Positions 8,791-58,003 of a DNA stretch of 64,000 bases are shown piece by piece. The notes below the pieces were generated by a model that saw only the letters and a program-made list of their open reading frames with translations, was not told the origin of the DNA and did no database searches. The number at the start of each line of letters is the position of its first letter. The first letter of the stretch is position 1. A program made the position numbers and the translations under genes. This DNA comes from Paramoeba atlantica (Eukaryota; Protista; Discosea). The stretch spans positions 186,001-250,000 of the forward strand of contig CDRNVI010000052.1 of assembly GCA_977017575.1 (NCBI GenBank), written 5' to 3'.

Positions 8791-8970
8791 TCCCGTTTAT
8801 CAACAACAGTTCCCCTGGCATGTTAAGCTGTACCGCCGTTTAGGTTAGCTGTTCAGGAAAGAATTGTAATTAAAGCTGTAAGAATAAGAGTTGCAGAACA
8901 ATATTTACAAAGAAATATAAAATTGTTAAAAATGTGGAAAGGCTAAATTTGACTGAATTTAACCGAACAT

Positions 8971-16816: not shown

Positions 16817-17632
16817 ATGGGTGTACAGTTCAGCTCTCCGAGTAGCGTCGAAGGATTTCAGGTTGTGCACGTTAAACCTGAGACACCCGCACACCGCTGT
16901 GGCTTACTTCCTTACTTTGATTTTATTCTTTCCGTTGACGATATGCCTTTGGATGCAGAGAATAAACACTTGTTTCCAGCTCACATAGGACGAAAAGTCG
17001 ACAACGAAGAAGTGGACCTTAAAGTCTATAATCTCAAAGTGAAACAAAGTCGCAATGTTTCCTTGGCTCTTGGCCGATCGTCTTCGGGTCAGGGTGAGAT
17101 GGGGTGTAGTGTTACGTGGAATAGTGTGGAAAACGCAGAACAATGTGTTTGGCACGTGACAAGTGTCGCATCAGAAAGTGCAGCTGCGCAGGCGGGTATT
17201 CTCTCAGAGCGTCATTTTCTGTTGGGCATGGAAATATTGAGCCTCGTTGAGGAGAAATCTAGGCCAATGATGCTGTTTTCAAAGCCATCCGACTTTCGTG
17301 AACGTCTGGAAAAGTGGAGCGCACAGCGAATCCGTCTGTTACCTAAATGCCACGAGAAGTCGGGGAAAATTTTGTTTCTTGTGTATGATACGATTACCAA
17401 CACAATTTCCGAAGTTTGTCTTGTTCTTCAAGATATTTCTCTTGGAATAGATGTCGGTAATGGTTATATGCACTCTATTCCAGTTTCGACACAGCTTCCT
17501 CTCTTAGAGACTTTTCATGAAAATAATAGAGTTGATACGAGCCTTCCACATGTCCCAGAATCTTCTTCATCTAGCCTTGCTGACCAGCCCACATATTCTG
17601 ATTCTTTCAATAATTTTAGACCAACAATATGA
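16817..17632 (+). CDS. GRASP: Golgi reassembly-stacking protein (GRASP55/65 family)
   Basis: MGVQFS myristoylation motif; tandem PDZ-like domains (GFQVVHVKPETPA..GLLPYFDFI, VWHVTSVASESAAAQAGI, LGIDVGNGYMHSIP). Confidence 0.9.
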   Translation: MGVQFSSPSSVEGFQVVHVKPETPAHRCGLLPYFDFILSVDDMPLDAENKHLFPAHIGRKVDNEEVDLKVYNLKVKQSRNVSLALGRSSSGQGEMGCSVTWNSVENAEQCVWHVTSVASESAAAQAGILSERHFLLGMEILSLVEEKSRPMMLFSKPSDFRERLEKWSAQRIRLLPKCHEKSGKILFLVYDTITNTISEVCLVLQDISLGIDVGNGYMHSIPVSTQLPLLETFHENNRVDTSLPHVPESSSSSLADQPTYSDSFNNFRPTI

Positions 17633-17771
17633 AATGATAATCAGCTTTGAACGTCTTTGAAAACCATTTTACCTATTTTTGTAGGGTAATACTACTCCAT
17701 AATACCACAACAACTGCTGTATTCGATTCTCTCGAACCTCTATCATAGTCTCATTCTCTTAACGTGGTGTA

Positions 17772-18575
17772 ATGTTCTTACTACCGTTTGCAGACAACTC
17801 AGCTCCTGTCTCAAAAAGACGTAAAACTGAAAGCGCTTTCTCAGACTCCGCCTCCCCAATCCCCAAAACAACTGCATCCAAAGTCCGGGGCGTCGCACTT
17901 CCCCAAGAATTTGAAATGGATTACTTTTTACGCAACATTACAAATCGTCATCCCTCATGGAACACTGATCGGTCCCTTTGTAAGTGGGAAGGTGTCCTGT
18001 GTTGGAAGGAAGGAAAGGTGTCTGAGGTTCGCTGGGGGAATTATCCGATTGACGGTACCCTTTGGTGGGACAGCACACCCCACTCCTTGCTGCGTCTTGA
18101 ATTACACTGCGGTATATTCCGTGAAAACGCTCTTTGCGGTGATGTGAAGCTCGCTGCTCTCCCGGACTCTCTGGAGCGACTCTATCTATGGGGTCAATCC
18201 TTTTCAGGAGAAATTGATACTCGTAGCTTGCCTCGCTCTCTGCTCATATTGCAGGCATATCTCAACAAGTTCTCAGGAAGTCTTGACCTCACAATCCTTC
18301 CCTCTGGACTGTTTCAAGCGTTTCTTAACAACAATCAATTTGAAGGAGAAATTAATCTCCGTGTGTTGCCAGCGTCATTGGAACAGCTAAGCCTTTCGTG
18401 GAATCATTTTACCGGTATTGTGGATATTTCTTCCCTTCCAGAAGTCATGTTCTCGCTCTGCCATAAATGGGATCCGGAATGCGAAGATCTCCCGCTTTGT
18501 AGCATCCGTCATGACTCTTACACCGCTCCCTTCCCGAGCAGCGCTTGTTCAATGGGGCCGCAGCACCTACAGTAA
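17772..18575 (+). CDS. Leucine-rich-repeat protein whose C-terminus is replaced by retroelement sequence
   Basis: LCKWEGVLC cap and repeats such as GSLDLTILPSGLFQAFLNNNQFEGEI. LRR periodicity ends near 18455. Confidence 0.75.
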   Translation: MFLLPFADNSAPVSKRRKTESAFSDSASPIPKTTASKVRGVALPQEFEMDYFLRNITNRHPSWNTDRSLCKWEGVLCWKEGKVSEVRWGNYPIDGTLWWDSTPHSLLRLELHCGIFRENALCGDVKLAALPDSLERLYLWGQSFSGEIDTRSLPRSLLILQAYLNKFSGSLDLTILPSGLFQAFLNNNQFEGEINLRVLPASLEQLSLSWNHFTGIVDISSLPEVMFSLCHKWDPECEDLPLCSIRHDSYTAPFPSSACSMGPQHLQ

Positions 18576-19200
18576 CATGAAATGCCCTATTTGCAACGAC
18601 CGAGTGCAAACCGTCAGACACACCCTTTCCGCCTGCACCACTTCACTTCAGCAAGGACGATATACTTTCCGTCATAACCTTGTCCTTGCCGAATTTGCGA
18701 AACATATTAGGGAAGCACAGGGAACTGAGTTTTCATATTTCGACCTACCAGGAGAGCGTAACCCACCAGCTTGGCTGAGGGAACACGATACACTGCTCCG
18801 TCCCGACGGTTACATTAAACTTCACAATGGGACAGAGTTCCTCATCGAACTCACAGTCCCATGGGAGGAGAATGCGGAGAACGCTCATCGGAGAAAATCC
18901 GAGAAGTACAACATCCTTTTACATACACGGCGACAGGAAAACCCGGACACCTACATAATAGCCTTTGAAATAGGTGCCCGGGGATTCCCCAATGGGTCAT
19001 GCAAATATATTAATGCCATCTTTAACGGCGACCATATTTTGGCCACAAAGTGTCGAGAAAGCATGACACAGATGGCCCTCAGGGGGAGTTACATACTCTG
19101 GGCTCGCCGAAATGAGGCGACATGGTCGGAGGAGGAAACGTATTGACATTATCTTCTAAAAAGGGGGCAATCCCGTTGAATGCGGGTCATACCCCCGACT
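18455..19200 (+). mobile_element. 5'-truncated RLE-type non-LTR retrotransposon (HERO/R2-like): CCHC finger plus restriction-like endonuclease
   Basis: LPSRAALVQWG..CPIC....TVRHTLSAC....QGRYTFRHN, RPD, IELTVPWE, KSEKY, FEIGARG. Frame ends at 19146; 3' boundary approximate. Confidence 0.85.
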
Positions 19201-37280: not shown

Positions 37281-38285
37281 CTAATATGTATGACCCCCTC
37301 TCGCACCAATCACTGCTCTCATACGGCGAGGCATGCTGCTCACCGTAGACGCGCATAGGGCACTGGGAAGTGCGTCCCACACAACTTTGGCCCGGCCCCA
37401 AAGCTCGATCATTCCCTCTGTGTCCTTCTTATAGGCAGAGAGACGCCGTTTTGAGTGGCCCCACATGTTCTCAATAGGATTGAGATCTGGGGATTGCGGG
37501 GGCCACTTCAAAACCACATAGCTGTGGCTCGCCAACCACTCTTTGGCAAGCTTGCTTGTGTGTTTGGGGTCGTTGTCTTGTTGAAACAAGACCTCGTCGG
37601 GATCTAGCCCCACTTGCTCAATGGAGGGGGCAAGATTCTGATCCAGAATTTCAACGTACTGATGGGCGTTCAAATTGCCCTCAATCAAACGTATCTTGCC
37701 CACCCCTGCGTGCGCAATGCACGCCCATACCATCAAACTCCCGCCCCCATATTTCACCGTCCCTTCCGTGTTCCGGGAGTCGGGCTTTTCATTCACCCGA
37801 AGCCACACCCAGCGTCTCCCATCCCAACCGAAACGGTTTACTTTGGTTTCGTCCGTCCAAAGTACCCGCTTCCAGTCTTGGATGGTCCAATGCTGGTGCG
37901 CAATTGCAAAGTCTAACCTTTGACGTTTATGGGAGGCCGTGAGTCGTGGCTTCCTTTGCCTGCGCCTCCCGTGGAGACCCTCTTCTCGGAGGTGGAATCG
38001 TACCGTGTGGGTGCTCACATGAGTAACTTCATGGATTTTGAGGTGCTTAGCCACACCTACAGCTGTATCTTCCCGGCCGCTTTGGATGAGGCGGCGCATT
38101 TCACGGGCGCACGTCTCGGTGACCTTACGCGGCCTCCCCCGCTCTGGGTGCGTTACATCTGGACGATGCCGCTCCCGAACCCGACTTACCGTGGACCTGC
38201 TAACGTCCAGTTTGGAGGTGATTTCAAAGATAATCACTCAACAAAATATTTTTTCATAAGATTGAGACATTTTTTAACGTCACTG
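37281..38285 (-). mobile_element. Tc1-family transposon (DD34E-type transposase), 3' TIR missing
   Basis: WTDETK, QQDNDPKH, WPPQSPDLNPIENMW. In-frame ATG at 38270 is followed by TGA at codon 11. CAGTG-type terminus at 38285 with no matching left TIR. Confidence 0.9.
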
Positions 38286-38393
38286 CATATAAATGCAAAT
38301 GTTTAATATTAATAAAAATTTATTAGAAGAGGAGTACTGCATTTCTCTAATCATTGCTTTGCTGTGGGCTCTGCCCTCTGTCTTGTTACTCTT

Positions 38394-39520
38394 ATTGCGG
38401 TGGTTGTAAAACTACCGCTCTACCCTCGATTATTGAAAAAAAGGTGAACAAAAACAGTGAAAATATAAAGAGGAACATATTAATAAAGGAAAAAAATATA
38501 AAATGGGGCTCCGGTGGTCCAAAATTGAAAAAAATGGGGCTTCCAGGGGGCGGGGGTCCAGGGGGGGTCTTGGCGCGCATTTTCCACCCCCCTACCCGGG
38601 GGTGGCCCCCCTCGCGTATCCGCAGGACGGGTCCGCCAAGTTCAGATTTTTTCGGAAGAAACATTTGAAAAAAAATTCAACTTGGCGAAACAAATGGCAA
38701 AAAAAAATCCAAAATCGCTTCCCCTATTCTATTTTGATAGTTTGGGACCTACACTAGCTTTCTCCGCAGTTGTTTTCGCAAAACTACCGCCGCGTTTAAC
38801 GAAGAGCCTAAAAAAGAAAATTTATCCTGGAAAACGGAAAGATTATAGCCTAAAATAGCCGAATTTCGGGTAAAAATGGGGTGATTTTCGCGTATTTTTG
38901 CTGTCAGATCACTAAATCCGACATTTGCGCGTGGGAAATCACTCGTAGGCATGAATGGAAGCCTACCGAACGTATTGGGTAGAGAATGCGACTCCAACCA
39001 TGCCATTCTTTCGACACAAAAATGCCCCTTTAGGTCCGAAAAATACTTTTTCACCTTTTTTAGTCAAACATGGGTCATTTTGAGGGGCGCACCACGGTTC
39101 GAAGGGATACCTTGCGAAAACAACTGCGGAGAAAGCTAGTGTAGGTCCCAAACTATCAAAATACAATAGGAGAATATTTTTTTTGTCATTTTTTTCGCCA
39201 AGTTGAACTTTTTTTCAAAAACAATTTTCCGAAAAAATCCGAACTTGGCGGACCCGTCCTGCGGATACGCAGGGGGGTCACCCCCGGGTAGGGGGATGGA
39301 AAATGCGCGCCAAGACCCCGGCTACCCTTTCTGCGGTTTTTTTTCGAAAACTTATTTTTTCGAAAAAATTTGCTCGACCATGACCCCCCTGGACCCCCCC
39401 TGGATCCCCCCATGGACCCCCCCCATGGACCCCCCATTTTTTTCAATTTTTTTTTTCAGTTTTGGACCACCGGAGCCCCCTTTTATATTTTTTTCTTCTA
39501 TTATATTACTGTGTTCCCCT
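38394..39520. repeat. Large fold-back: ~400-bp inverted arms around a ~320-bp spacer
   Basis: 38394-38789 is the reverse complement of about 39110-39520 (with one insertion). The spacer recurs at 53460-53640 and inverted at 55640-55880. Confidence 0.8.
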
Positions 39521-39907
39521 TTATATTTTCTTTTTGCCGCGGCGACGACGACTTCCTCGCGTGGAAAGCTGTAAAGCGCCATAGGGAACATGTTCGGATG
39601 GCTATGTAATCCAGGATAAAGTGGACGAGGGTGATACTAAAGGCACCTTTGGAAAACCACCTCGAAACTGGAACGGTATCTCCCGGTTTGTAGAGCATTC
39701 TGATGTGGCAAAAGGGTCTTTAACGGGTGATACCGTTCCAGTTTCGAGGTGGTTTTCCAAAGGTGCCTTTAGTATCTCCCTCGTCCACTTTATCCTGGAT
39801 TACATAGCCATCCGAACATGTTCCCTATGGCGCTTTACAGCTTTCCACGCGAGGAAGTCGTCGTCGCCGCGGCAAAAAGAAAATATAAAGGGGAACACAG
39901 TAATATA
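39500..39907. repeat. Palindrome family P, copy P1 (~185-bp arms, ~38-nt loop)
   Basis: Arms near-identical by eye (two mismatches in the inner ~105 bp); loop GTTTGTAGAGCATTCTGATGTGGCAAAAGGGTCTTTAA. Confidence 0.9.
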
Positions 39908-40016
39908 ACAGTATATCAGTAATAACAAGTCAGAAGTTTCAAAGACAATTTAATAAATTTTATAAAATTGCGAAATTTATAAATTTTTTAAATATCGGTG
40001 ACGCACTTTTTAACGT

Positions 40017-40611
40017 ACCGGTCGAGCGGAAAATTTGGTCCACTTTTATTTGGCCCCAACAAATTTGGTCCACATAAATTTTGGTCCGACTTTATTTTTC
40101 CTTCGGCGGCGGTCCAAAATACTTTTTGACTTTATTGTCAGTCGTTTTTAAAGTTTACTAAATTTAGAACTCGTCATTAGAAATTTTTGCTTCTTTCAAT
40201 CGACACTTCGTTTTTTAGTCTTCGTGTAATGTCTCAGTCTGTTGAATGGGTGCAGAAAATCTTTGATCAAGATATTACTCTACGCACGTAGGGTCATCAC
40301 TATAACACATATAGTGAGGCTGAAGTTAGACCAATTTGAGAATTGTGTGTGACACGAAAGGTTGCAAGTGTTGTGAGCTACTGGAATAGCACGCAAAGCA
40401 AAAACAATCTAAAAGTACGGTCCTTCATTTTCTGGAAAACGAAAAATATAATAACGATATCAAGCCTCGAGGGAGGCCAAGAAAATATATCTTTTTTATT
40501 TCAATGCAGGAAAAATTTGGCCCCAACAATTTTGGTCCACATAAATATTGGTCCGACTTTTTTTTCGAGCTCGAAGGACCAAATTAAAAAAATGTCAAAT
40601 TTTTTGCTCGA
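40017..40611. mobile_element. Possible non-autonomous DNA transposon with imperfect ~20-bp TIRs
   Basis: TACCGGTCGAGCGGAAAATTT versus the reverse complement of AAATTTTTTGCTCGATCGGTA; internal repeated TTTGGTCC motifs. No clean TSD. Confidence 0.4.
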
Positions 40612-41223
40612 TCGGTAATTAAAATGTGCGTTTTTTTAATTAACGTAGCATATTAATTAACGTAACAATTAATTTTGGTAAAAAAATGGTAAAAAAATCT
40701 GTTCTACTTGGGGTCGGCCTAGAAAGGGCCATGTCTCTCTTACTGGGAGGTCTCTTACTGTTGGTTCTCCGGTATCTTTGGAAAGCATTCTCATTGATTT
40801 TTATAAACCCCGTTCCGGTTTAATGTACCTGTAGATCGCTATTGGAGCCCCTGCAACTTGGCGTCTTTTTTGGGTCCACTCGGGGTCACGGTGGGTCACT
40901 AGGGGCCGTGGTGGTCCCCTAGTGACCACTGCTACTTGTCCTTGTTGATCATTTTGTATGTATGTAATTGTTGAGGGAGATACGGAGTATCTAACTCGCT
41001 TACTAAGGTTAATTCCAAAAACTGAAAAAGATCCCCAAAGAAGCATAAGACTGAGTTTTTTCAAAATTCCAAAACGTAGCAGTAGGTCATTAGATGAACT
41101 CTTAAATACTCTAGAAATCATCTAAAACAACCTTATTTCCCAAATTTTAGAACATTTTTCGTAAACAAAAGTGCGTGTGCAAAGGTCTGCGATACGACAA
41201 ACTGGTTGACTAAGGAGCGTCCT

Positions 41224-41295
41224 TTGAGTAGTCCAGTTGGTAAAGGGGTTCCATTTTGACGCTGAACGTCCGCGGTTCGATTCCCGACATTGACA
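41224..41295 (+). pseudogene. Degenerate tRNA (Gln-like TTG anticodon loop)
   Basis: TAGTCCAGTTGG A-box, TTTTGAC loop, GGTTCGATTCCC B-box, downstream TTTT; stems do not pair. Confidence 0.45.
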
Positions 41296-41405
41296 TTTTA
41301 CTAAAAAAATCGAAAAAAAAATTATTTGCTCAAGATCGCCAAAAAAAACAAATTCGGAACAATTCTTTTTTTTCAGATTTTTTTTTCTCGTGCATACGTG
41401 TACAC

Positions 41406-41787
41406 GTGGCACTTACTCTTTCGTGGCAGTGGTGTACTGCCACGTGAGGCAGTGAACGCAGTGTAGATGCAGTGTAAGTGCACTGCCACGTGAGGCAGTG
41501 ACTGCAGTGCAGCTGCATCACGTACGTGAAAGAGTAACTGTACTGCCACGTGAGGCAGTGAACGCAGTGTAGATGCAGTGGCACGTGCGAGAGTAAGTGT
41601 ACTGCCACGTGAGGCAGTGAACGCAGTGTAGATGCAGTGGCGCGTGAGAGAGTCAGTGACTGCAGTGCAGATGCAGTATAAGTGCACTGCCACGTGAGGC
41701 AGTGACTGCAGTGCAGCTGCATCACGTACGTGAAAGAGTAAGTGTGCGGCCACGTGAGGCAGTGAACGCAGTGGTGCGTGAGAGAGT
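41406..41787. repeat. CACGTG-containing minisatellite (~59/76-bp units), left part
   Basis: Recurring ACTGCCACGTGAGGCAGTG hairpin plus GCAGTGTAGATGCAGTG; continues after the IS30 insertion. Confidence 0.85.
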
Positions 41788-43230
41788 TGTGGATTGTCAT
41801 ACTCAGTGCAACACCTTTTTGTCATACTCAGTGCAACAAAAATGAGAAAAATATGGGTGTGTTCCGGATGTCAGGATTTTCGCATACTCAGTGCAACACT
41901 GTTTTTTCGGTCGGACAGCACCACGAACGGACACGGGATTGTATGAGCCATGTTAAGAAAGAAACAATGGATTAAGGAAAAAAAATTATATAAGGAGAAG
42001 AAAAAAGGAGTACCTGGATAATCGATATTGACGGAACAACATAACGCGTTTCTTTAGTAAAGAGATAAACTTTTTACCTTTACTACTTTACAACTTACGG
42101 CTATACAACTTACTGCTTTCATGTATAGTACCGTCTCTTTATAGTAAAATTTGGCCTTCCAAGGTCTTTGGGGAGACCCATTTCAAGCACTTTCGTGGCC
42201 GTTTCTTCAGTTTGTTGGCCGTCTTACTAACTTCGCGCTGTGTCAACCCCTCAAAAGTATCTGACTTGGTGTGATACTACCGGACCAGACCATTCATGTT
42301 TTCAACGGCCCCCTTTTCCCATGAGTGGTAAGGATGACAAAAGTAAGATTTGCATCCTAACTTCCTGTTGATGGCTTCATAATTGGTGTTTTCAGTTCCA
42401 TTGTCATACGTTATGGTATGCACTTTGTATTTCTTTAAGGCTTTCAGCACCTGTGTTTCAACTTGTTTTGACTGCTTGGATTGAAATACACGGACAACAA
42501 ACCTTTCTTTCGTTCACAAAGGGTCAGGATGAAATACCCACTTTTCTTTGCTCCCTCAATTAAATCGGCCTCCCAATCACCATACCGACGTCGTGTGTTT
42601 ACTATTTGGGGACGATGATCGATAGAAACCCGGTTTGGAATGGTACTTCGACCATGAATGCGTCGAACATAAGGCCGCCTTCCGCGGATCCGTAGGCACC
42701 TATGAATCTTCCCCCCATTGTCTTTGTCTCGACGAACAAATCGATAGATTGTGGAGGTGGATGGTGAACCTTGTGAGCCGACAACAAGTGTATTAGCAAC
42801 CTGCTCCGGGCTGTGAAGCTTTCGGAGACGGGTCTTTACACTTTTTTCAAGACTGGCTCGAATTAGACGTGGTCTGGTCCCTTTATTAACCAGTCGTCTC
42901 TTGGCAACACGATGGGCACGTCTGGAACGATATTGCCCACCTCTTTTCCTGTTGCGTGCCAGCTCACGACATACCGCACTTGGGGACTTATCAATCGATC
43001 GGGCAATTTCCCTCTTCGTGGCGCCACTTTCAAACATCGTTTGAATATCTTTGCGATTGTTTTCAGATAATCTTCTGTACTTTGGCATGAATGAACTCAA
43101 TTATGTAGAAATTAGTATATGAAGTGTACTATGTAGAAATTAACCTTTTGTTGCGCTGAGTATGACAATTATTATTATTTTGTTGCACTGAGTAATGACA
43201 ATTTGTTGCACTGACATTGACAATCCACCA
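41788..43230 (-). mobile_element. IS30-family insertion sequence (1443 bp) with 26/27-bp terminal IRs and a 2-bp GT target duplication
   Basis: Left IR TGTGGATTGTCATACTCAGTGCAACA; right IR (reverse complement) TGGTGGATTGTCAATGTCAGTGCAACA. GT at 41786-87 and 43231-32; removing the element and one GT restores the array motif GAGAGAGTAAGTG. Confidence 0.9.
42139..43100 (-). pseudogene. IS30 transposase (~320 aa) with a 1-bp deletion near 42505 and TAG at 42277-79
   Basis: HTH LSENNRKDI...G...REIARSIDKSPSAVCRELARN; SPEQV; RP.IV..RRRYGDWEADLI; after the shift ERK(T)RF..TITYDNGTE..YFCHPYHSWEKGAVENMNGLVR..KRPRKCLKW.SP. Confidence 0.92.
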
Positions 43231-43960
43231 GTAAGTGACTGCAGTGTAGCTGCAGTGGCACGTGCGAGAATAAGTGCACTTCCACGTGAGGCAGTGAACG
43301 CAGTGTAGATGCAGTGGCGCGTGAGAGAGTAAGTGTACTGCCACGGGAGGAAGTGAATGTATTGATGTAGTGCAGCTGCAGTGGCACGTGCGAGAGTAAG
43401 TGCACTACCACTGTAAGTACAGTGGTACGTGAAAGAGTAAGTGTACTGCCACGTGAGGCAGTGAACGCAGTGTAGATGCAGTGGCACGTGAGAGAGTAAG
43501 TGTACTTCCACGTGAGGCAGTGAACGCAGTGCAGATGCAGTGGCGCGTGAGAGAGTCAGTGACTGCAGTGCGAGAGTAAGTGTACTGCCACGTGAGGCAG
43601 TGAACGCAGTGTAGATGCAGTGGCACGTGAGAGAGTAAGTGTACTTCCACGTGAGGCAGTGAACGCAGTGTAGATGCAGTGGCGCGTGAGAGAGTCAGTG
43701 ACTGCAGTGCGAGAGTAAGTGTACTGCCACGTGAGGCAGTGAACGCAGTGTAGATGCAGTGGCACGTGAGAGAGTAAGTGTACTTCCACGTGAGGCAGTG
43801 AACGCAGTGCAGATGCAGTGGCGCGTGAGAGAGTCAGTGACTGCAGTGCGAGAGTAAGTGTACTGCCACGTGAGGAAGTGACTGCAGTAATGCAATGCAG
43901 CTACAGTGGCAAGTTCGAGAGTAATGTACTGCCACGTGAGGCGGTGACTGTATTGATGCA
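43231..43960. repeat. CACGTG minisatellite, right part, with a ~134-bp higher-order unit
   Basis: Same units as 41406-41787; near-identical blocks repeat through 43430-43870. Confidence 0.85.
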
Positions 43961-44110
43961 GTGTGTAGCTAGAGTGGAACGTGGGTGCAGGTGGCTGCAC
44001 ATGAAACACCCACATGAGAGACCGTGCGCCACCAGTGGCTGCACTGGTGTTCCATTTAGAGAGTTTTGTTACAGATCGCCATGTTGTGGAAGGGTGGCCA
44101 GCTGGGAGAT

Positions 44111-44316
44111 AACCCAGATTGAAAGGGTCGAGGGAGATACGAAGCAACAGGCGTGGCAGATTCCCACTGAAAAGAAATGGTATCTCCCTGCACGAAGTTT
44201 GTCTCCGAGCTAGCAAGCGCAAAGGCTTTTCTCGTGCGGGGAGATACCATTTCTTTTCAGTGGTAATCTGCCACGCCTGTTGCTTCGTATCTCCCTCGAC
44301 CCTTTCAATCTGGGTT
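44111..44316. repeat. Palindrome family P, diverged copy P4 (~85-bp arms)
   Basis: Near-perfect arms. Shares AACCCAG..T.AAAG.G..CGAGGGAGATAC, GGTATCTCCC and the GTTTGT...CAAAGG loop with P1/P2. Confidence 0.8.
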
Positions 44317-44319
44317 GTG

Positions 44320-44709
44320 ATGGGAAAAATATATTGTCCTCGCTGCAAGGTGGACCGCCACGTGTCTTTGGGGGAACCTATAAGGTGTGTAATGTGTGCA
44401 TGCACCATTGAAAGTGATGCAAAGGATCCTTGCATCCAATGTCAAAGGGTCTCTGTAATCATAGGTACGAACTACTGTCCTCTATGTAATGCTCCACAGG
44501 ACTCTGAACGACTTCTGCCCAGTGCCATCGACCATCTACACGCTCGTGAGCTTCAAGGGAAGCACAATTTTCGCGCTCTTGCGGATGGAGGGTTTTATGA
44601 AAGTCGCACCAATATGCTGATACTGCCTCATTCAAAGACAATTCCCGTATCAGTTGTCCAAGCAAAAACAGGACCACAAGTGCGAACAATCTCTTTTACA
44701 CTTTCATAG
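44320..44709 (+). CDS. Small Cys-rich multi-zinc-ribbon hypothetical protein (129 aa)
   Basis: CPRC, CVMC, CIQC and CPLC pairs; ATG lies immediately after palindrome P4. Confidence 0.4.
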   Translation: MGKIYCPRCKVDRHVSLGEPIRCVMCACTIESDAKDPCIQCQRVSVIIGTNYCPLCNAPQDSERLLPSAIDHLHARELQGKHNFRALADGGFYESRTNMLILPHSKTIPVSVVQAKTGPQVRTISFTLS

Positions 44710-45078
44710 CTTTTTAGGTCATGTTTTCATAAAATCCATGAATTCCTTAGTGGGGTATTATCAATGCCTAGCACCTGTCCCTCGCCGGAGGTATTTCTCG
44801 TCGGTTTTTGGGTCCACTAGGGGCCACACTGGGCCACTCGGACCCTGCATTGAGTCCATTGTACCGGGGGTGGGGGACAATACGTGGGAACGCTTGGTTT
44901 TATTGTACACCCCCTGCGTAAAAGAGGGCCTTCTTTTGCCTTTTCACAGATTTTCTTTCTAAAAATGATTACATTTTTACCCAAATTAGCAGCGAAGACA
45001 TGAAAATAGCGAAGCTCCGACTATTTTCGGGGAGAATATTTCCCGACTATTTTCGGGGAAGCTCCGAATTCGGGGAAG

Positions 45079-45441
45079 AATTCAAAGTTTGAAGCACATG
45101 GTGCTCAGACGGCGAGTTCAAACCCGCTCATCCCAATATTCCCGGCGGCCTCACTCTAAGAGGCTGGGCTGATAACCGACTAGGTCCAGTACTCGGAGGA
45201 CCGTCCCGGACCCTCCCCTCAGGGAACCAGCTCCCTTACCCGGCTTACACCTCTTGGGTGAGCCGTGTTGACGTACAGTTCGTCGACGCAGCGTGTTGGC
45301 AACATCACGTTGGTGCCTTTGGACAAGCGGAAACTGGTAGAGGACGTCGGCCTCGGAACTTCCAAATCTGTCTGTGAAGGGTCTGGCTTGCCAGTGACCA
45401 TCCAGAGAGATCCGGAATGATTTGGATTTTTTTTGGATTTT
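45079..45441 (+). mobile_element. tRNA-headed SINE, 5'-truncated copy
   Basis: Highly similar to 54051-54441; GGATTTTT tail; possible 7-bp TSD GGGGAAG (45072-78 and 45442-48). Confidence 0.75.
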
Positions 45442-45635
45442 GGGGAAGCTCCGACTATTTTCGTTATTTTTCGGAGTTGTTATTGTACCTGTAGCTACGC
45501 ATTCTACCTGTAGCTAGTTATTGTACCGGGCGGGTACATTAACCCGGACGGGGGTTTAATTACCGGTGAAGCTTTTATTAAGAATAACATTAATTAAAGT
45601 AATTTCTGACGAGAAAAAATGTTTACTTTAATTAA

Positions 45636-46395
45636 TTCTTTTTTAGGCTCTTCGTTACACGCGCTGGTTATTTTCAACTTAGAAGTCACTAATGCTGCGT
45701 GCTTCGCGTTGAAAACTACCACCGCGTTTAAAGAAGATCCTAAAAAAGAAAAATCGCCAAAAGATCATGAATAATCTATTTTTTTGCGTGAAAATGCGCG
45801 ATTTTTAGGCGAAAATTGCGAAATTTTAACCCGAATTTGTACCATTTTTGATGCCTTACCAGTAGGGGTGGGAAGCGAATCAGCCGAAAAAAACGTCGTT
45901 GAATGGTAGCTGAGGCCCAAAACTCTTAAAATGCGTTTTAGGAGTCGATTTTGGAAAAATAATATCTTTACTTTCTTTTGGGTCAAAAAACTTTTTTTTT
46001 GGGTCACCCCAAAAAAATCGGACATTTTGATCTTGTCGGACCCCTCCTGCGCGTACCAGGGGGGGTACCCCCAGTGGGGGGGTGAAAAGTTATCGCCGCG
46101 GCCTACTCTATCACTTCCCTGCGCTCGATTTCGAAAAGCAAAAAATTTGAAAAAACTTTCTTGACGTATGCTCCCCCCTGGACCCCCCCTGGACCGCCCC
46201 CTGGACCCCCCCCTGGACCCCCCTCCCCTAGACCCCCCGTTTTTTTCAATTTCTTTTTTCATTTTCGGACCACCGGAGCCCCCTTTTGTATTTTCTTCTA
46301 TTATATTACTGTGTTTCTCTTTATATTTTCACTGTTTTTGTTCACTTTTTTTTCAATAATCGAGGGTAGAGCGGTACTTATACAACTACCGCAAT
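45636..46395 (+). mobile_element. Fold-back repeat HpA+B, copy 2
   Basis: Collinear with 8971-9706. Confidence 0.7.
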
Positions 46396-47549
46396 GCTAC
46401 GTTAATTAAAGTTACGTCAATTTATGTTTTTGTGGCGTAAGTAAATTTGAGATTTACTATTTTTAAGCCCATAAGATTGAACGTAGTTTGCACACTTTTC
46501 CAAAATTTCCCAAAAGGTAACTAAACATCAACGAATTCCAAAGAAAATCAAGAATAAGCACACTAGAAGGTTTCTGCACAAAACAATGCCCCATCCAACA
46601 AAACTCGTACCAGCGGACTTAACCTCACTTAACAGAAGACGTGTGACCATGATTTCACCCGTACCTGAGAACGTCAAAAGGTCAAAAATACTACAGTGTA
46701 GCAACGACTCTAAACTATGTATTTTGCAAGAAACAGAAACAAAAAAGAATTAAAAAATCGTTTTCTACTTTCGTGAAAAACTAAGCAAACATCGCTCAAT
46801 TCCATCTAAAGCGAAATACTCCACCGCCTATGGGTGTTGTTTCCAAGGGCAACTGGTCGTATTCTTGAGACATCTTCTAGAAATTTAAAAAATGAAATTA
46901 GTAATTATTTTTCGTCATTTTTTGACCAAAATTAATTATTACGTTAATTACCGTAGAAACTTCAATTAAGGGTAATTAAAATTAAGGCAACTTTAATTAA
47001 GGCAGCTTTAATTACACCCAAGCAAAAAATTATTATCGCTAAAATTATTGGCACAAAAATTATTGTTTTTTTAATTATAAGCTGTCAATTTTTGGCGAGA
47101 AACATTTTTTAATTTTTTTGGTCAATTTTTGAATTTCTCATGAGGTCTGATCTTGGCAACCACGTTTTAGAGAAGAGTTCCATAGATTTTACACAAAAAT
47201 TCAAATTTTATGAGAGGATTTGACGCGAGAGAAGCGAGATTGGCTTTATGTCAACACCCGGTCGTGAGATCATGCGAGATCACACCCGCATCCCATCATT
47301 TAATGACCACTTAATAACCTGCCCTTCGCAACGCATTTGGCAAGATTAGAGAGATGCAAACCACCGTCCGGGTTATACCTAGGGACACTTGTGCTTCCTA
47401 AGGATAATAATTTTTTGGCGATAAGCAACTTTCTTCCCCGTAAAAATTCTTGAATCTTTTTGGGAGCAAAAAAACCCTTTCGACCTAATTTTGGGGTTTT
47501 CCGCCCCTCTACTAACAACTTCTATTGTTTGTCAATATGTACAAATTTC

Positions 47550-48623
47550 CAGGGTTCGCAGAAACTATAAAACTATCAATATAGTACTATATAGTTACTA
47601 TAAACTTTTTTCGAAAACTATAAAAAACTATATTTTTTTGTTTCACATTTTAGGCACTCCGAAGCTCACCAACACGCCATAAATACACGGCGAATTCATT
47701 TGTGTACGATTTTTCTTATTTTTAAACCCGAAAATTGATGCCCGAAATTAAAGTTACGAGGGGTAGTTTCTGCAAAGATTATTTTATTGAACTGCTGCAC
47801 ACGGAGGGAAGTAAAAAAGCGGTTGAATGTAACTTGTGTCAGGAGGGGACGTACCCCAGTCCCATCGCGTGGCCTTGACAGATTGCCTTGTGCGAATCTT
47901 GCGTCCCGAACATCTTCTCACTGCATCGCTGTCGCCGCGCTTTGGCTGGAGCCACCGACGTTATGTCTTGGGACTGAATAACTGCTGCTCACAATTCTAT
48001 GAGTTTGAATAAATACAATCATATGAGTCTGAATAAATTACGCGGTGTGTTGTCGAGTGGAGAGTTTGTACTTCCTATCGTCACTCCTTTCGCATGCGTT
48101 TCATTGCCATTTCCGAGGAGATGACACACTAGTTGATGATATTTTTCGGCGGTGATGGAATCGCGGGGAAGAGGGAGCATGTTTCGATAGCTATGTAACC
48201 CAGGATAAAGTGGACGAGGGAGGTTCTAAAAGCACCTTTAAACCACCACAAAAATAGAATGATATCTCCCGGTTTGTAAAGGATTCCGACGTGCCAAAAG
48301 AATCTTTAAGGGACATACCCTTCCATTTTTATGGTGGTTTAAAGGTGCTTTTAGAACCTCCCTCGTCCACTTTAGCTTGGGTTACATTTTTTTCAGAATT
48401 TCTTGTCATATCATACGTATGTAAGCGTGTAAGAACGCATGTAAAGGCGTGTGTATGTCCTTCACAAGCGGAGAGGACTCAAAAAATATCACTTGTAAAG
48501 TGAAAAAAACTTTATAGTTTTCTTATAGTTTTATAGTAAAATATAGTAAATATAGTACTATATAGTAACTATATTCAATGAAAAAAACTATATTTTACTA
48601 TATTATAGTTTCTGCGAACCCTG
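47550..48623. mobile_element. Non-autonomous hAT element (1074 bp)
   Basis: TIR CAGGGTTCGCAGAAACTATA; exact 8-bp TSD CAAATTTC (47542-49 and 48624-31); ACTATA subterminal repeats. Confidence 0.88.
48193..48387. repeat. Palindrome family P, copy P2 (~78-bp arms), inside the hAT element
   Basis: Arms ATGTAACCCA...AAACCACCA / reverse complement; loop similar to P1. Confidence 0.85.
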
Positions 48624-49167
48624 CAAATTTCTACAAAAATTATTGGCACAAAAATTATTGATTTTTTAATTAAAAGTTGCAGAGCTTTGCCAATAATTAA
48701 AACCTCAATAATATTAGTCGGCAGTGTAAGGCAATAATTAATTTTTTGTCATTTTGGGGAAAAAATTGGGAAAAAAAAATTTCATGATTCCGTCTCAGAC
48801 TTTTCCTTTCAATGATCGTTTTAACTTTTCTCTCACACGTTGAACTGGTTGAAGACCGTAAAGTTAGGCGAAACAGGCGAAGCTCGTCTAGAAAAGTTCG
48901 AAAAACATGAAAAATGATAACAAATTGAGCACTTTTAGCAGAAATGTGATATTTATGCTACAAACGACAATATTTAAATAAGAACTTTTTGGGCTTTTAT
49001 CAGCGCCACTTTAATTAAGGCAACTTTGATTAAGGCAAAAATTAATTTTTAAATCCGTTCTGCCTTAATTACTTTTATCCTTAATAACCGTTTCCCCGGT
49101 AATCTCGAGTGCAAGATTATATTCAAATCGTTTTTTGTTGCGACATTATACAATTAACATCAAATTA

Positions 49168-49544
49168 AACGGGGGTACGACTTAATGTACCGGGTACCCT
49201 TTTATATACCGGGGGGGTATAATCGCTACCCAATATACCCCCCCCTGGGCACCGTGGAAAACAAGGGGGTGGTGGTATAAACGCTCAAAAGAAATAGAGC
49301 GTTTATGCCTCCCACCCCCTTGTTTTCCACGGTGCCATCATGTATTGTCCCTTTTAACCTCTTTGGTTACCGTAAAAAACAGGTCCTCTTTGGTTTACCG
49401 CAAAAAAACATTGGAGCTAATATACCCCCCACCCCCCCGCATTATACCCCCCACCCGGTATAAACGGTGAGCGAATATACCCCCCCTTAATATACAGAGT
49501 ACACTTTATTATACCCCCCCTGTACATTAAGTCGTACCCCCGTT
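49168..49544. mobile_element. Tc1/mariner-superfamily MITE (377 bp) with TA TSD and internal ~88-bp palindrome
   Basis: TIR AACGGGGGTACGACTTAATGTAC; TA on both sides; the empty site CAAAT-TA-CGACATTATACTC is visible near 27500; hairpin at about 49248-49335. Confidence 0.9.
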
Positions 49545-51247
49545 TACGACATTATACTCAAATACGATTTATTCCCATTTTCTCGAAAATAACGTTGTTT
49601 ATTCAACAACGCATTCCTTGAATAGAACTCATTCTGCACATGAACGTGTTTGTCCATAAAAAAAGGGCCGCGAAGCGACGCCAAATTTTTTTTACCCTTG
49701 TTTTGGTTTTTTCCGATATTTACATTATTAATTATTGTGCCTAGAGCCAATTATTGTGCAGGGGTGGAACAATAACCCGGAACAGGGTTTACTTTAAATC
49801 AACGAACGCTCAGCTAAAGCAAAAGAATCAGGCGGCAAAGGATGCACGCAGCAGAGATTTGCACTCAAGTCAAAAAGAGCAAAAGAGGAAAAACAAAAAT
49901 ATATAGGCGCTTTCTAATTAATAGTAAATGTTTGTTTAGCTTCTCCTACCTTCATATGCACATTGTTTATGATTTTTAACAATTGAATGAGTTTTCTTTA
50001 AAAAAAGGGTCGCTCTTACGTCGAATTTCTAGAACTCGCGTTTCGACCAAGTCTTTTCTTCCGCTTAAATTCAACCAGGACCGGTGGGATCGGCCGAGAT
50101 CGACCGGGATCGTAAATCTCTAGTTTCAGCCCTCTAATTATTACGTTCCTTAATTTTTAGGCTCTTCGTTAAACGCGGTGGTTGTTTTCAACTTAGAAGT
50201 CACTCATGCTGCGCGCTTCGCGTTGAACCTTGAGCAAGGCTTACGTTTTGCGTTTCCTACCGGTACACTTTTGTCATGTATAGGTCACATGATCAATTGC
50301 GTTTGTAAGACAGTTTTCAAGTCCTACGAAGAGTCTGCTTCTTTTAAATTTAAGAAAGCGTTCTCTCAAGCCTTTTATTCTTCCGGGAAGGTAGTGCTTC
50401 AAAGGGGAAGTACAAAGGTGTAGCGCTCGGGATGAAATTAGCTAAATGTGACGAGTCCTTCTTAAGAGCGTCGTCCAATTTTCGGACGTACTACAGTAGG
50501 TTCGGGGAGCGCTGCCTCAAACGCTATCGCCCAGGCCTAGAAAAGGGTGTTGTTGAAAGCCTTAGAGTTTTACAATCTGTAATCCCTAGTGAATCTCAGG
50601 AACTGCTCGCAAAGTTGGATCCATGTATGAACTTGATCAGTGCACAAGGTCCCGGGAGTTGTACTACCAAGGCAGTGAAGACTTACCACACAGTGAAGAA
50701 TACTTCCATTAAATTTCAACTTCTTACCCCTTCCGGACTCGTTCTCCATTTAAGTAACATCCCTCCCGCTGTACAAATTAGAATCCCGGATAGAACTCTT
50801 CATCCCTTCCCGACTCGTTCTCCATGTAACTAACATCCCTCTCGCTAAAAATATTTGCTTTCAGAATAGCAAGCTAACAAGCGAGCGAGAGATACCCACA
50901 CCAAGTTTTTGAATACGTTTACTATCCTAGTACGGTAGTTAGTACGTACTAGTACGAAAATAGGGGTCCGTACTAGATTTAGTACATCGTACCGTACTAT
51001 GCACATGTGTGTAGTATTAATTTGAAGGTACCTACTTCGTTTTTATGCATCAATAAATTGTGTTTTTCGTCTAAAAAATCTTACCTCGAAATTGCAAAAA
51101 AACTGTTCACATGTTTTTTTTACTTGCACCCGATCACACTTTTGTTACAAAGCTGATTGAGTCGGAAGCTCTATGGCAACATATACGTAGTATATGTAAA
51201 TTTTATATACATGTATGGAGTACTCACGCGTACACTACTCTGATATG

Positions 51248-55489: not shown

Positions 55490-56070
55490 CTGTCTTTTTG
55501 CCGCGGCGACGACGACTTCCTCGCGTGGGAAGCTGTAAGGGGTCCTAGGGAGCATGTTTCAATGGCTATGTAACCCAGGCTAAAGTGGACGAGGGAGATA
55601 CCAAAGGCGCCTTTGGAAAACGACCACAAAACTTTGACTAAAAAAAGGTGAAAAAGTATTTTTCGGACCTAAAGGGGCATTTTTGTGTCGAAAGAATGGT
55701 ATGGTTGGAGTCGCGTTCTCTACTCAATACGTTCGGTAGGCTTCCATTCATGCCTACGAGTGATTTCCCACGCGCAAATATCGGATTTAGTGCTCTGAGA
55801 GTCAAAATACGCGAAAATCACCCCATTTTTACCCGAAATTCGGCTATTTTTAGCTATAATCTTTCCGTTTTCCAGGCTAAATTTTCTTTTTTAGGCTCTT
55901 CGTTAAACGCGGCGGTAGTTTTCAACGCGAAGCGCGCAGCATGAGTGACTTCTAAGTTGAAAACAACCACCGCGTTTAACGAAGAGCCTAAAAAAGAAAA
56001 TAGTTACCGTCCGATCCATAATTAAGGAATTTCTTTTTTAGGCTCTTCGTTAAACGCGGTGGTTGTTTTC
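55490..56070. repeat. Half of palindrome P, inverted spacer module, and HpA copies
   Basis: 55500-55627 matches the P1 left arm; HpA inverted at 55882-56000; extra HpA arm at about 56030-56070. Confidence 0.75.
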
Positions 56071-56206
56071 AGAAGTGTGTGTTCCGCGCAAAACTCTCAC
56101 TGAACCATCCGTGTAGAAATGTACAGATTTAAGTTTGGTGAATGGAACGCTAGATTCTTCAATAAATTGCAGATCTTTATACCGTCCGATCCATAATTAC
56201 TGCGGT

Positions 56207-56606: not shown

Positions 56607-58003
56607 AAGAGTACAACACTCAGGGTTCCCGAGCGATCGCTCACCTCAGTACTAACTGAGCCTGGCGGTGCTTAACCTCACAAAGAACAGGATGTGGTGT
56701 TTTCACCGTAGTATGGCCGTACAACCTGCAGGTTGGTGGTTAGATTCCCGCTATCGACAAAACTCGCAACCTGGCGGCCTCACTCAAGGGGAAGCGATCA
56801 GGAGTTCCTCCAAGGCCCATACTCAACCCCGCTCCCCTGGAGGACCGATCTGGAACCGCCGAGCTGAACCAGGCTCCGGCGCAACCGCTAAATTGCGATC
56901 TGCCTACGCAAAGGAGGCTTGAGACACAGCCTAAACGATTCGAGGCGGTTGGACGCCCGTCCTGGTAGCTACGGTTGCGTAGCCGTTCTCGGGCTGCAAG
57001 GTGTCGAGTGCCGTCTGGGAAGGGGGTAGCAAGACAATGAAGGTCAGTGACCTGAAACTCTACCCTAACGGTTGGCGCTGCAGAGCCCTCCGTGTCTTCT
57101 TCTTTTTCTTCTTCTTCATCTTCTTCTTCTTCTTCTTCTTCTTCTTCCGCAAGGAATACATAGATGCATTCCTTGGCAATGTTGTGCCACATGTTTGGTC
57201 ATAGCCTCTTTTTCAAGAGGTGTTTCGGAACACCTGGTATGTGTTTTCCGTTTCAAGGACGTTTTCTGTCCAAAGAAAAGCTGTCCAAAAAAAGCTTCTG
57301 CGGGTTTTGTTCGAAAAAAGTTTTTTTCAAAAAAAATTCGTGCGGTATCCCCCCCCCACTAGACCACCCCCATGGACGCCCCCCATGGACCCCCCATTTT
57401 TTTCATTTTTTTTTTAAATTTTGGCCCTTTTTGATCTTTTGCACAAAGTTGAGCTTCGGGATTCGGAAGGTCACTTTCGAGAAGAATAACTCACCAATTG
57501 TAATAAGTTGATCGTCGTTCGTTCGCTTTTTGTACCTTTTTATGCACTCTTCTTGAGCTTCCGTACTGACTGAAAAATCTTAAAAAGGAAGACGATCACA
57601 ACAACACAACAACAAAGACACTGATATTTGAATATCAGTTAAAGGGTCTGTAATTTACACCATAAAATAGAACCCACCTACGTACAAGCTCACTTGGCTT
57701 TTACGCGTAGAAGCATCTTCTACGACCATGACATACATACTTCCTCATTACTTTCTTTGGTAAATAACCCGTTAGGTGCGAATGCGGCTTCCGGCGCTTT
57801 GCTTTCATAACCATTTGACTTCCTTATCTGTTGGCTCTATATTCCTGTTTTTGCCTAGGGCAAAGAGCGAAAAAGCTTAATAAATCCAAACCTTATTGAC
57901 AAAATCAATATCCTATCTCTCTTCTTCATAAAACGTATATTAATACTAATGGCATAGTGTATTTAACGACTTCCCTTAGCATGGTTTTGCTTTCCTTATT
58001 TGC

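Follow-up and report, generated by a model that had tools for sequence, protein, structure and literature searches.

How do the two arms of a long palindrome stay alike while copies of that palindrome diverge from one another? The window analysed here (64,000 nucleotides of the Paramoeba atlantica genome, on contig C52; positions are counted from its first letter) raises this question with three palindromes, P1, P2 and P4. A preliminary description had proposed that the arms co-evolve within each copy and that something actively maintains their symmetry. We find that P1, P2 and P4 are giant 3' terminal palindromes of Helitron2-like (HLE2) rolling-circle transposons. It is likely, as a joint claim, that they are HLE2 end hairpins and that their arms are kept matched by the need for a hairpin together with template switching or fold-back synthesis.

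Three palindromes of one architecture

As the preliminary description held, P1, P2 and P4 are genuine palindromes that have arm boxes and loop motifs in common. P1, which it had placed at 39500-39907, is real with different measured bounds (Table 1), and its arms are 98% complementary. The near-perfect arms reported for P4 were confirmed (85 nt, 98% complementary), and those of P2 (48193-48270 and 48310-48387) are 78 nt long and 91% complementary. Folded as single-stranded DNA, P1 reaches -245 kcal/mol (z = -48.8) and P4 -110 kcal/mol (z = -22.9), values matched by no shuffle. The three palindromes share the outer motif AA(C/T)CCAG, an outer box CGAGGGAGATAC (with the variants GGGTGATAC in the left arm of P1 and GGGAGGTTC on both arms of P2), an inner box GGTATCTCCC, and a loop starting with GTTTGT and ending with CAAA(A)G. 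The tRNA and Rfam scans of the window returned a 5S rRNA as their sole match and none at the hairpins, and no open reading frames longer than 100-200 aa were found within 1.5 kb of the latter.

Table 1. Coordinates of the palindromes and of the elements that harbour them.
Feature	Position	Strand	Details
P1, full extended palindrome	39498-39911	.	Arms of 188 nt (39498-39685 and 39724-39911); loop of 38 nt
Piece of unrelated abundant repeat 'Y' (...ATATTACTGTGTTCCCCTTTATATTTT)	39498-39528	+	Left of the truncated element; mirrored at 39881-39911
5'-truncated non-autonomous Helitron2-like element	39529-39801	+	Body 39529-39607 and canonical 3' terminal palindrome 39608-39801
Canonical left arm of P1	39608-39685	+	Outer box CGAGGGTGATAC at 39626-39637; inner box GGTATCTCCC at 39675-39684
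Asymmetric loop of P1	39686-39723	+	TTTGTAGAGC...GGCAAAAGGGTCTTTAA; sequence partly conserved across subfamilies
Canonical right arm of P1	39724-39801	+	Inner box GGGTGATACC at 39724-39733; outer box GTATCTCCCTCG at 39772-39783
Fold-back-copied tract	39778-39911	+	Mirrors 39498-39631; starts between 39778 and 39793
Complete non-autonomous Helitron2-like element, P4 type	40971-44316	+	Mini-hairpin 5' end TTGAGGGAGATACGGAGTATCT; ends in P4
IS30-like insertion	41788-43230	.	Nested in the P4-type element; missing from the related L031 and L056 copies
P4 terminal palindrome	44111-44316	+	Arms of 85 nt (44111-44195 and 44232-44316); loop of 36 nt
hAT-like MITE carrying P2	47550-48623	+	1,074 bp; TIRs CAGGGTTCGCAGAAACTATA... 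and ...TATAGTTTCTGCGAACCCTG
Helitron-derived passenger fragment in the MITE	48172-48391	+	21 nt of body and P2 palindrome 48193-48387

Placement among Helitron2-like transposons

These elements share a number of features with Helitron2/HLE2 transposons (PMC3627910; FoHeli, PMC5148889; HELIANO survey, PMC11417382), namely a common 5' inverted repeat hairpin, a complementary 3' repeat and a 3' hairpin, T-T insertion without duplication, a DUF6570-Rep-helicase protein, abundant short non-autonomous copies, copies of the 3' end only, and compensatory hairpin changes, which were reported for Helitron2 already in 2013 (PMC3627910). A full element begins with TTGAGGGAGATAC, folded as a small 5' hairpin (TTGAGGGAGATAC(TAC)TCCCTCG at more than 20 element starts), and ends in a palindrome of ~195-205 nt that reaches the terminus. 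Each arm harbours the same box twice, in opposite orientations, by its outer end and by the loop. The 5' end has its inverted partner in the last box, GTATCTCCCTCG, located 18-20 nt from the 3' terminus; in P1, it is this outer box of the right arm that constitutes the 3' copy of the repeat. Positions 32-304 of P1, which correspond to the 273-nt 3' part of the element, are the only ones matched by at least 40 copies in the genome, and these copies share a sharp 3' end, ...CCTGGATT, at which the truncated P1 element also ends. Positions 1-33 of P1, considered as the terminal inverted repeat of a MITE, were rejected as such, because they belong to the abundant repeat 'Y'.

P4 is an intact 3' element end. 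The P4-type element contains internal minisatellites, and both its ends are common to the L031 and L056 copies. Helitron2 elements insert between T and T (or T and C) without duplication; correspondingly, an empty paralogous site (L039, n=1) reads ...GTAATTATTGTGATGGG and the filled site ...GTAATTG/TTGAGGG...CTGGGTT/GTGATGGG (slashes mark the element boundaries), so that the P4-type element sits in TT with no target-site duplication.

Candidate enzymes are encoded in the genome, which holds 29 Helitron_like_N matches, with PIF1 colinear in individual frames reaching 2,975 aa, and 24 matches to DUF6570 (PF20209) directly upstream of the Rep matches in the same frames. On contig C99, for example, DUF6570, Rep and PIF1 follow each other at 18450-18854, then 17394-18077, then 14718-15281. 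The location of DUF6570 upstream of Rep is a marker of HLE2 (PMC11417382). By coordinates only, a hairpin lies 4.4-7.2 kb downstream of a RepHel frame and on the same strand in six places (P1 type on C34, C82 and C86; P4 type on C99, C102 and C40), against ~0.2 expected by chance in a rough estimate. Of the partners and DNA forms envisaged in the preliminary description, an HUH enzyme is borne out by the RepHel frames upstream of hairpins, and protelomerase, tyrosine recombinase and hairpin-ended extrachromosomal DNA received no support.

The hairpins themselves depart from the described ones. In Helitron2, the 3' hairpin is short and directly preceded by the 3' repeat (PMC3627910), the whole hairpin lying within the last 20-50 bp, whereas the 3' hairpin found here is several times longer, the box occurs four times per palindrome and the loop is present in both orientations. 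With stems of 78-85 bp and the 3' repeat inside the 3' arm, these elements represent a variant of Helitron2/HLE2. Our literature search found no work joining Helitron, palindrome and flip-flop.

P2 is a dead Helitron relic riding in a hAT-like MITE. MITEs of the hAT type have TIRs beginning with CAG or TAG and generate 8-bp target-site duplications, and the carrier of P2 displays both traits. Its TIR is 20 nt long (CAGGGTTCGCAGAAACTATA), and 8-bp duplications flank the window copy (CAAATTTC, at 47542-47549 and 48624-48631) and seven others.

How the arms stay alike

The preliminary description had read the differences between P1 and P2, including a 3-nt indel, as mirrored, and they are indeed found on both arms of the P2 copy in the window. 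Between the consensus arms of subfamilies, differing columns are mirrored in 28 of 29 cases for the P1 type versus P4, in 28 of 35 versus L002:2284-2473 and in 6 of 10 versus L024:2782-2972. The proposed covariation check, performed on 66 copies and 78 pairs, showed that 94.8% of cells pair versus 84.4% in shuffles, a level reached by 0 of 500 shuffles, and that pairing drops to 39-50% of cells when the partners are slid; 33 pairs have changed on both sides, and the covariation score is 0.315 versus 0.137, with both the mirrored-change and the covariation counts resting on approximately five or six independent lineages.

Arm-to-arm identity inside a single copy amounts to 0.95-1.00, and left-arm identity between subfamilies to 0.57-0.64 for two distant pairs and 0.91 for a close pair. 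The claim that arms are more alike within a copy than between copies holds at this level; inside families it fails, since copies of one family resemble each other more than the two arms of a copy do. Changes in inserted copies mostly affect a single arm (P1 family, 143 versus 8 mirrored; P4 family, 35 versus 5), indicating that conversion is infrequent or tied to source copies. Mirrored private changes exceed chance expectations (8 versus ~0.9, and 5 versus ~0.06). Co-evolution of arms in each copy largely describes the source lineages, and the decay of inserted copies mostly proceeds arm by arm.

Consensus arms are matched at 76/77 and 78/78 positions in the two functional families, versus 66/77 in the passenger P2 lineage, which suggests that selection retains the paired stem in lineages still transposing. 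Selection on a functional hairpin probably adds to template switching, the respective shares of selection and conversion not being separable in quantity. The four boxes are probably recognition sites for RepHel, and the 37-38 nt between boxes may need only to pair.

At the hairpin, template switching or fold-back synthesis copies one arm onto the other. Of what the preliminary description offered for active maintenance of symmetry, arm-to-arm conversion and self-primed fold-back synthesis stand, with direct examples in the P2 family and in P1. Asymmetry prevails in the P2 family: it is already present in the ancestral arms, and the right arm of the youngest copies has been rewritten to mirror the left. 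Three changes of the right arm in these derived copies, a 3-nt deletion and two substitutions, mirror the left arm exactly, and we identified one intermediate (L065) and a second lineage (L074).

The exceptional length of P1 is a one-off at its locus and no family trait. Its 188-nt arms are the product of one fold-back copying event, coincident with a 4.8-kb loss. A near-identical second copy of the window locus, on contig C8, is devoid of the fold-back tract: the match runs to ~39802 and picks up again at 39921, and a C8-specific segment of 4.8 kb (of which the first 1.5 kb were read) is absent from C52 at this locus. The tract, known from one assembly contig (C52) only, carries 110 mirrored bases past the normal 3' end (39801) and a G-to-T change at 39793 that converts a mismatch. 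The family consensus has G at this converted site, which gives the direction of change between C52 and C8. The right arm was resynthesised off the left arm over a stretch that starts 10-25 nt ahead of the normal end and reaches 110 nt past it. Break-associated fold-back inversions near short inverted repeats, in which a 3' end anneals in a nearby inverted repeat and extends, with an associated deletion, follow a pattern that the P1 extension fits (PMC7999016, PMC3834830). It differs from them by a 118-nt filler rejoined to the same chromosome, with no chromosome-scale inverted duplication. No inverted dimers besides P1 turned up in the 74 copies that were examined. The palindromes of greater size in L010 and L016 are inverted pairs of other repeats.

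Relative to the body, the loop can point either way. In the P4 family, 7 copies have one orientation and 6 the other, with bodies and arms 97-100% identical, and a second body type of this family is split 2 versus 2. The ratio is 24 versus 1 in the P1 family, indicating that loop flipping is not automatic. As both isomers have spread, loop orientation is irrelevant to mobility.

Template switching between the arms of inverted repeats is known to homogenise arms and invert the spacer (PMC8604942), to expand arms (PMC13100816) and to maintain hairpins (PMC8794818). Arm homogenisation, arm extension and spacer inversion, the same three signatures as in template-switch mutation and quasipalindrome correction (see also PMC7202029), are present here, which points to template switching at inverted repeats; the process that rewrites arms also extends them and inverts the loop. 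Most described cases concern short repeats of 5-30 bp, in contrast with the 78-188-bp arms of a mobile element in this genome, where one event was moreover coupled to a 4.8-kb deletion. The loop in both orientations, the P1 fold-back event and the rewriting of P2 arms are new here.

Other readings and significance

Among the alternatives, a parvovirus-like rolling-hairpin step fares best, and we regard it as unlikely. RepHel would bind the four GAGGGAGATAC boxes and nick the base of the palindrome stem, and the 3' end would snap back and prime synthesis on itself. The right arm would be renewed from the left in each cycle, with flip/flop isomers and occasional inverted dimers such as P1. That this one mechanism produced arm identity, isomers and dimers alike is doubtful, as is an origin of the giant palindrome in an ordinary short Helitron2 3' hairpin lengthened by fold-back extension. 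Consistent with such a step are the approximately 1:1 flip/flop ratio among near-identical elements of the P4 family, the linkage of the hairpins to an HUH Rep and helicase, the near-perfect consensus arms in two functional families, and P1 itself as a partial inverted dimer arising from fold-back synthesis near the normal 3' end. However, the P1 family is unmixed at 24:1, its P1 tract begins within the arm rather than at a terminal nick site and is joined to the 4.8-kb deletion, as in break repair, and body sequence lies on both sides in just 1 of the 74 copies. Arm conversion also occurs in the passenger P2, a cut-and-paste mover, and generic template switching explains all three signatures. 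The likeness to parvovirus/AAV inverted terminal repeats would lie in a terminal palindrome by the nick site of an HUH Rep (with helicase), Rep-box repeats in the stem, flip/flop isomers and a self-priming 3' hairpin. The elements described here differ in that they are chromosomal transposons and have the palindrome at just one of their ends, with no linear replicative form known and with flip/flop not 1:1 in every family. If true, the rolling-hairpin step would link rolling-circle transposons mechanistically to viruses with rolling-hairpin replication.

Selection on a long hairpin RNA, in which ~80-190 bp of dsRNA would feed RNAi for host defence or regulation and be kept intact by compensatory changes, appears distinctly improbable. 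The stems are long and nearly perfect and Piwi/Argonaute genes are present (7 matches), but the palindrome stops exactly at the transposon terminus, its conserved boxes correspond to the element's 5' end, and both the arm extension into unrelated DNA and the loop inversion are DNA-level events. Double-stranded RNA may be a by-product of transcription through the elements.

Foldback- or MITE-type DNA transposons, whose arms would be terminal inverted repeats cut by a DDE transposase, are very improbable as an explanation. DDE elements do exist in the genome (the hAT-like MITE, IS30-like elements), and solo hairpins of the P4 family are flanked by unique DNA on both sides. Against this, nearly all copies have a conserved body on one side only, a distinct small hairpin, as much as 3 kb away, forms the 5' end, insertion occurs in TT with no target-site duplication, and the sole true TIR element here just carries P2 as cargo. 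A long-TIR element was rejected for P4, whose body is found on either side of it, because symmetric ends predict one loop-to-body configuration and two are seen. Drosophila Foldback and palindromic MITEs resemble the present hairpins in their long inverted arms, internal repeats and strong hairpin potential; they have duplications and symmetric ends, unlike the one-sided bodies without duplication and the RepHel partner described here. Least probable of all is a fold-back artefact of sequencing or assembly, for which the extra P1 arm length on a single contig and the difficulty of assembling palindromes might speak, as the hairpin copies number more than 100 and have unique flanks on dozens of contigs, C8 and C52 are concordant at P2, P4 and canonical P1, and a chimeric read should give a read-length inversion rather than the 118-nt filler seen at a clean deletion junction.

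HLE2 end hairpins with arms matched through hairpin need and template switching thus remain the likely reading. One consequence concerns annotation: a Helitron-like host element comprises both the minisatellite 'arms' of the window and the hairpin that surrounds the IS30-like insert. To our knowledge, the recognition of Helitron ends is poorly understood so far, and this hairpin family tells the conserved parts (four boxes, their spacing and parts of the loop) from the stretches between boxes, which may need only to pair. It also offers a natural experiment on long palindromes, in which functional copies are perfect and a passenger decays and is later rewritten arm from arm. C8 and C52, for their part, capture a fold-back extension at one locus in two copies of it.

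Hairpin class and its carrier elements

The assembly searched is eukaryotic and comprises 45.7 Mb in 248 contigs; the window (G000:C52:186001-250000) contains intron-less ORFs in long same-strand runs. The motifs that the preliminary description had proposed as common to palindromes P1, P2 and P4 were all found in the sequences, as was every P1/P2 difference that it listed as mirrored in both arms. As single-stranded DNA, P1 and P4 have folding energies of -245 kcal/mol (z = -48.8) and -110 kcal/mol (z = -22.9), respectively. A genome search with P1 retrieved at least 40 copies, nearly all of which align to P1 positions 32-304 alone, i.e. 79 nt of upstream sequence and a 194-nt palindrome (window 39608-39801). 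P1-type copies stop sharply on the 3' side at ...CACTTTAGCCTGGATT and can be aligned upstream, through tandem repeat units, to a common start ~610 nt from the end, a small hairpin TTGAGGGAGATAC(TAC)TCCCTCGCTACCGTAGG. P4-type and P2-type hairpins are multi-copy as well, and the window plus 88 fetched loci (L-numbers hereafter) contain 74 distinct hairpins of this class (27 P1-type, 24 P2-type and 23 P4-type). The 5' box TTGAGGGAGATAC is the inverted counterpart of GTATCTCCCTCG, located inside the right arm, 18-20 nt from the 3' end, and each arm has a further, oppositely oriented copy of the box at its inner end, giving four boxes per palindrome. A second, unrelated palindrome family (TTTTTTAGGCTCTTCGTTAAACGCGGTGGTTGTTTTCAAC...) is devoid of GAGGGAGATAC boxes. 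The window also harbours a 5S rRNA gene (56608-56724, minus strand; Rfam, 75.6 bits).

The P4 hairpin is the 3' end of a complete 3.35-kb non-autonomous, Helitron2-like element (window 40971-44316), in whose minisatellite region an IS30-like segment (41788-43230) is nested. Loci L031 and L056 have both ends of this element without that segment, indicating that the hairpin and 'minisatellite arms' of this window are parts of the host element rather than of the IS30. The filled site reads ...GTAATTG/TTGAGGG...CTGGGTT/GTGATGGG... (slashes at the element ends) and an empty paralogous site in L039 reads ...GTAATTATTGTGATGGG...; the element entered a TT, without target-site duplication.

Published hallmarks of the Helitron2/HLE2 group are a 5' hairpin that contains an inverted repeat, a 3' hairpin together with a subterminal repeat on the 3' side (PMC3627910, PMC5148889), T-T insertion and the DUF6570 marker (PMC11417382). 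The elements found here show these hallmarks, but their 3' hairpin departs from the published ones in size and layout. Helitron_like_N has 29 matches in the genome, with DUF6570 just upstream and a PIF1 helicase ~2.7 kb downstream, all within common open frames that reach 2,975 aa. The search for a partner enzyme, suggested earlier, yielded an HUH-type Rep: at six places, judged by coordinates, Rep is followed on its own strand by a listed hairpin at a distance of 4.4-7.2 kb, with ~0.2 such pairings expected by chance (our estimate, for ~125 listed hairpin sites in 45.7 Mb). A dead remnant of a RepHel protein (Helitron Rep plus helicase), with DUF6570 and Rep fragments and stop codons, abuts a P1-type hairpin element. 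On contig C21, each unit of a tandem array contains a P4-type hairpin, which identifies the array as Helitron-derived, satellite-like DNA.

Members of the P2 family can be aligned over ~1.08 kb, which includes sequence to either side of the hairpin. The unit that carries it has 20-nt terminal inverted repeats (CAGGGTTCGCAGAAACTATA...) and, in all copies checked, 8-bp target-site duplications; it is a hAT-like MITE that acquired 21 nt of Helitron body and the hairpin. At least 30 copies are 96-100% identical, indicating recent activity of the family.

Coordinates of hairpins, carrier elements and associated repeats
Feature	Location	Details
P1 arms	window 39498-39685 / 39724-39911	188 nt, 98% complementary; inverted-repeat scan
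P4 arms	window 44111-44195 / 44232-44316	85 nt, 98%; inverted-repeat scan
P2 arms	window 48193-48270 / 48310-48387	78 nt, 91%; inverted-repeat scan
P2-carrying unit	window 47550-48623	1,074 bp; CAAATTTC flanking both sides
Rep with downstream P1-type hairpin	contigs C34, C82, C86	
Rep with downstream P4-type hairpin	contigs C99, C102, C40	
Dead RepHel remnant	L005:463-1504 (C52:288852-289893)	C8 copy in L008
Tandem array	G000:C21:764730-782370	1,995-bp period; L040-L046, L053
Mosaic P1-family copies	L020:1570-1783, L021:1570-1783, L024:1491-1704, L025:1569-1782	
Repeat 'Y'	window 9613-9640, 38460-38487 (-), 39502-39529, 46302-46329	>50 sites in loci
Second palindrome family	window 45636-45750, 8970-9090, 55881-56071; L011:689-885, L037:1759-1959	

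Arm symmetry between and within families

The arms co-evolve between subfamilies. Of 78 columns in the consensus arms, 29 differ between the P1 type and P4, 28 of these being mirrored, and comparisons of the P1 type with hairpins L002:2284-2473 and L024:2782-2972 gave 28/35 and 6/10 mirrored columns, respectively. Subfamilies have in common the boxes, their 37-38-nt spacing and the outer AA(C/T)CCAG; the inter-box stretch is unrecognisably different, with pairing kept. The covariation check that had been proposed came out in the same sense: across 78 pairs in 66 copies, pairing holds in 94.8% of cells, versus 84.4% after shuffling (0/500 shuffles reach the observed value) and 39-50% with partners slid, and 33 pairs have changes on both sides, these pairing and mirroring counts resting on only ~5-6 independent lineages.

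Private changes within families are mostly one-armed, with 143 against 8 mirrored in the P1 family (~0.9 mirrored by chance) and 35 against 5 in the P4 family (~0.06 by chance; both rough estimates). Divergent sub-lineages, for example L028 and L010:759-972, are where the mirrored ones are concentrated. The proposed co-evolution of arms holds between subfamilies but not for most within-family changes. As changes in individual copies are mostly one-armed, inserted copies decay, and it is chiefly the lineages giving rise to new copies that are symmetric. Consensus arms match at 76/77 positions in the P1 type and 78/78 in P4, whereas the passenger P2 family reaches only 66/77 and has a 3-nt indel in addition. 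Mosaic P1-family copies have a P1-type left arm with the loop and inner right arm of another subfamily, implying recombination or template switching between elements.

The P2 family provides a direct example of arm-to-arm conversion, one of the candidate processes of the preliminary description. Its majority, including the most diverged copies, reads GAGGGAGGTTC...CTTTAAACC on the left and GGTTTGCCAAAG...GTATCTCCCTC on the right. P2 of the window and four 99-100% identical copies lack GCC, reading GAACCTCCCTC, and the three changes of this group exactly mirror the left arm. L065 has the deletion alone; L074 has all three changes, and its other markers place it in another sub-lineage. Selection by RepHel is an unlikely cause of this rewriting, since the hairpin rides in a cut-and-paste MITE.

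Fold-back extension and loop inversion

Contig C8 has a counterpart (G000:C8:224718-241341) of window 37999-49900 at 99.7-99.9% identity, which is either a haplotig or the product of a recent segmental duplication. The match runs to the normal 3' end (39801/39802) and picks up again at 39921, with 4,836 nt in C8 where the window has 118 nt. Self-primed fold-back synthesis, also suggested previously, is borne out by these 118 nt, which are the mirror image of the P1 left side and are missing from C8. An arm mismatch just inside the 3' end is converted (G to T at 39793) and another, at 39777, is retained; G is present in the family consensus, which makes the C8 form ancestral. A 3' end inside the right arm would have annealed to the left arm and been extended by at least 119 nt, through the element body into an unrelated repeat (P1 positions 1-33), before being joined downstream with loss of 4.8 kb. 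From this comparison of contigs, the 188-nt arms of P1 appear to be a one-off product of fold-back extension; a comparable extension, of 15 nt, is present in L010.

Two further box-class hairpin elements lie within the first 1.5 kb of the DNA that is specific to C8. An abundant repeat, 'Y' (...agttttggaccaccggagcccccttttatattttttt cttctatt ATATTACTGTGTTCCYCTTTATATTTTCACTGTTTTTGTTCAC...caaccaccgcaat), is adjoined by several Helitron-like 3' ends exactly at ATATTACTG, and directly upstream of P1 two Y-type repeats (arms ~300-400 nt, spacer 330 nt) form an inverted pair of ~1 kb (window 38481-39535).

With all copies oriented by their asymmetric loop, we recorded on which side the conserved body lies. 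The body is on the left in 24 P1-family copies and on the right in one (L024:2782-2972), P1 itself having it on both sides; the P2 family has 24 left and 0 right. P4 copies are divided between 7 left and 6 right for body type a, and 2 and 2 for type b. When the 13 type-a copies are aligned by their bodies, identity is 97-100% over the arms and 160 nt of body, and the two groups have the central ~36 nt and an adjacent C3/G4 bulge in opposite orientations. Both groups include a 3-nt deletion in the body as well as loop variants. Each copy has a separate flank on the hairpin side, indicating that both loop isomers have transposed.

Origin of the symmetry

Polymerase template switching between inverted-repeat arms causes arm homogenisation, spacer inversion and arm expansion (PMC8604942, PMC13100816, PMC8794818), and fold-back priming is also established for breaks close to inverted repeats (PMC7999016). 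We regard these processes as the demonstrated mutational component behind arm symmetry. A parvovirus-like hairpin-primed step driven by RepHel would fit the flip/flop loop isomers, but it is improbable given that loop orientation in the P1 family is 24:1, that the fold-back tract of P1 starts internally and that arm conversion occurs in passenger P2 as well.

Argonaute genes exist in the genome. Bao and Jurka (PMC3627910) had previously remarked on compensatory changes in the hairpins of Helitron2. The perfect consensus arms of functional hairpins versus the decayed passenger point to a further force in active lineages, which might be either selection for a paired stem or homogenisation linked to a single-stranded intermediate of transposition. 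A 6-bp stem-loop follows the inner box in P4, as in the canonical Helitron2 layout, suggesting that the giant palindrome may have originated from an ordinary 3' end by fold-back extension.
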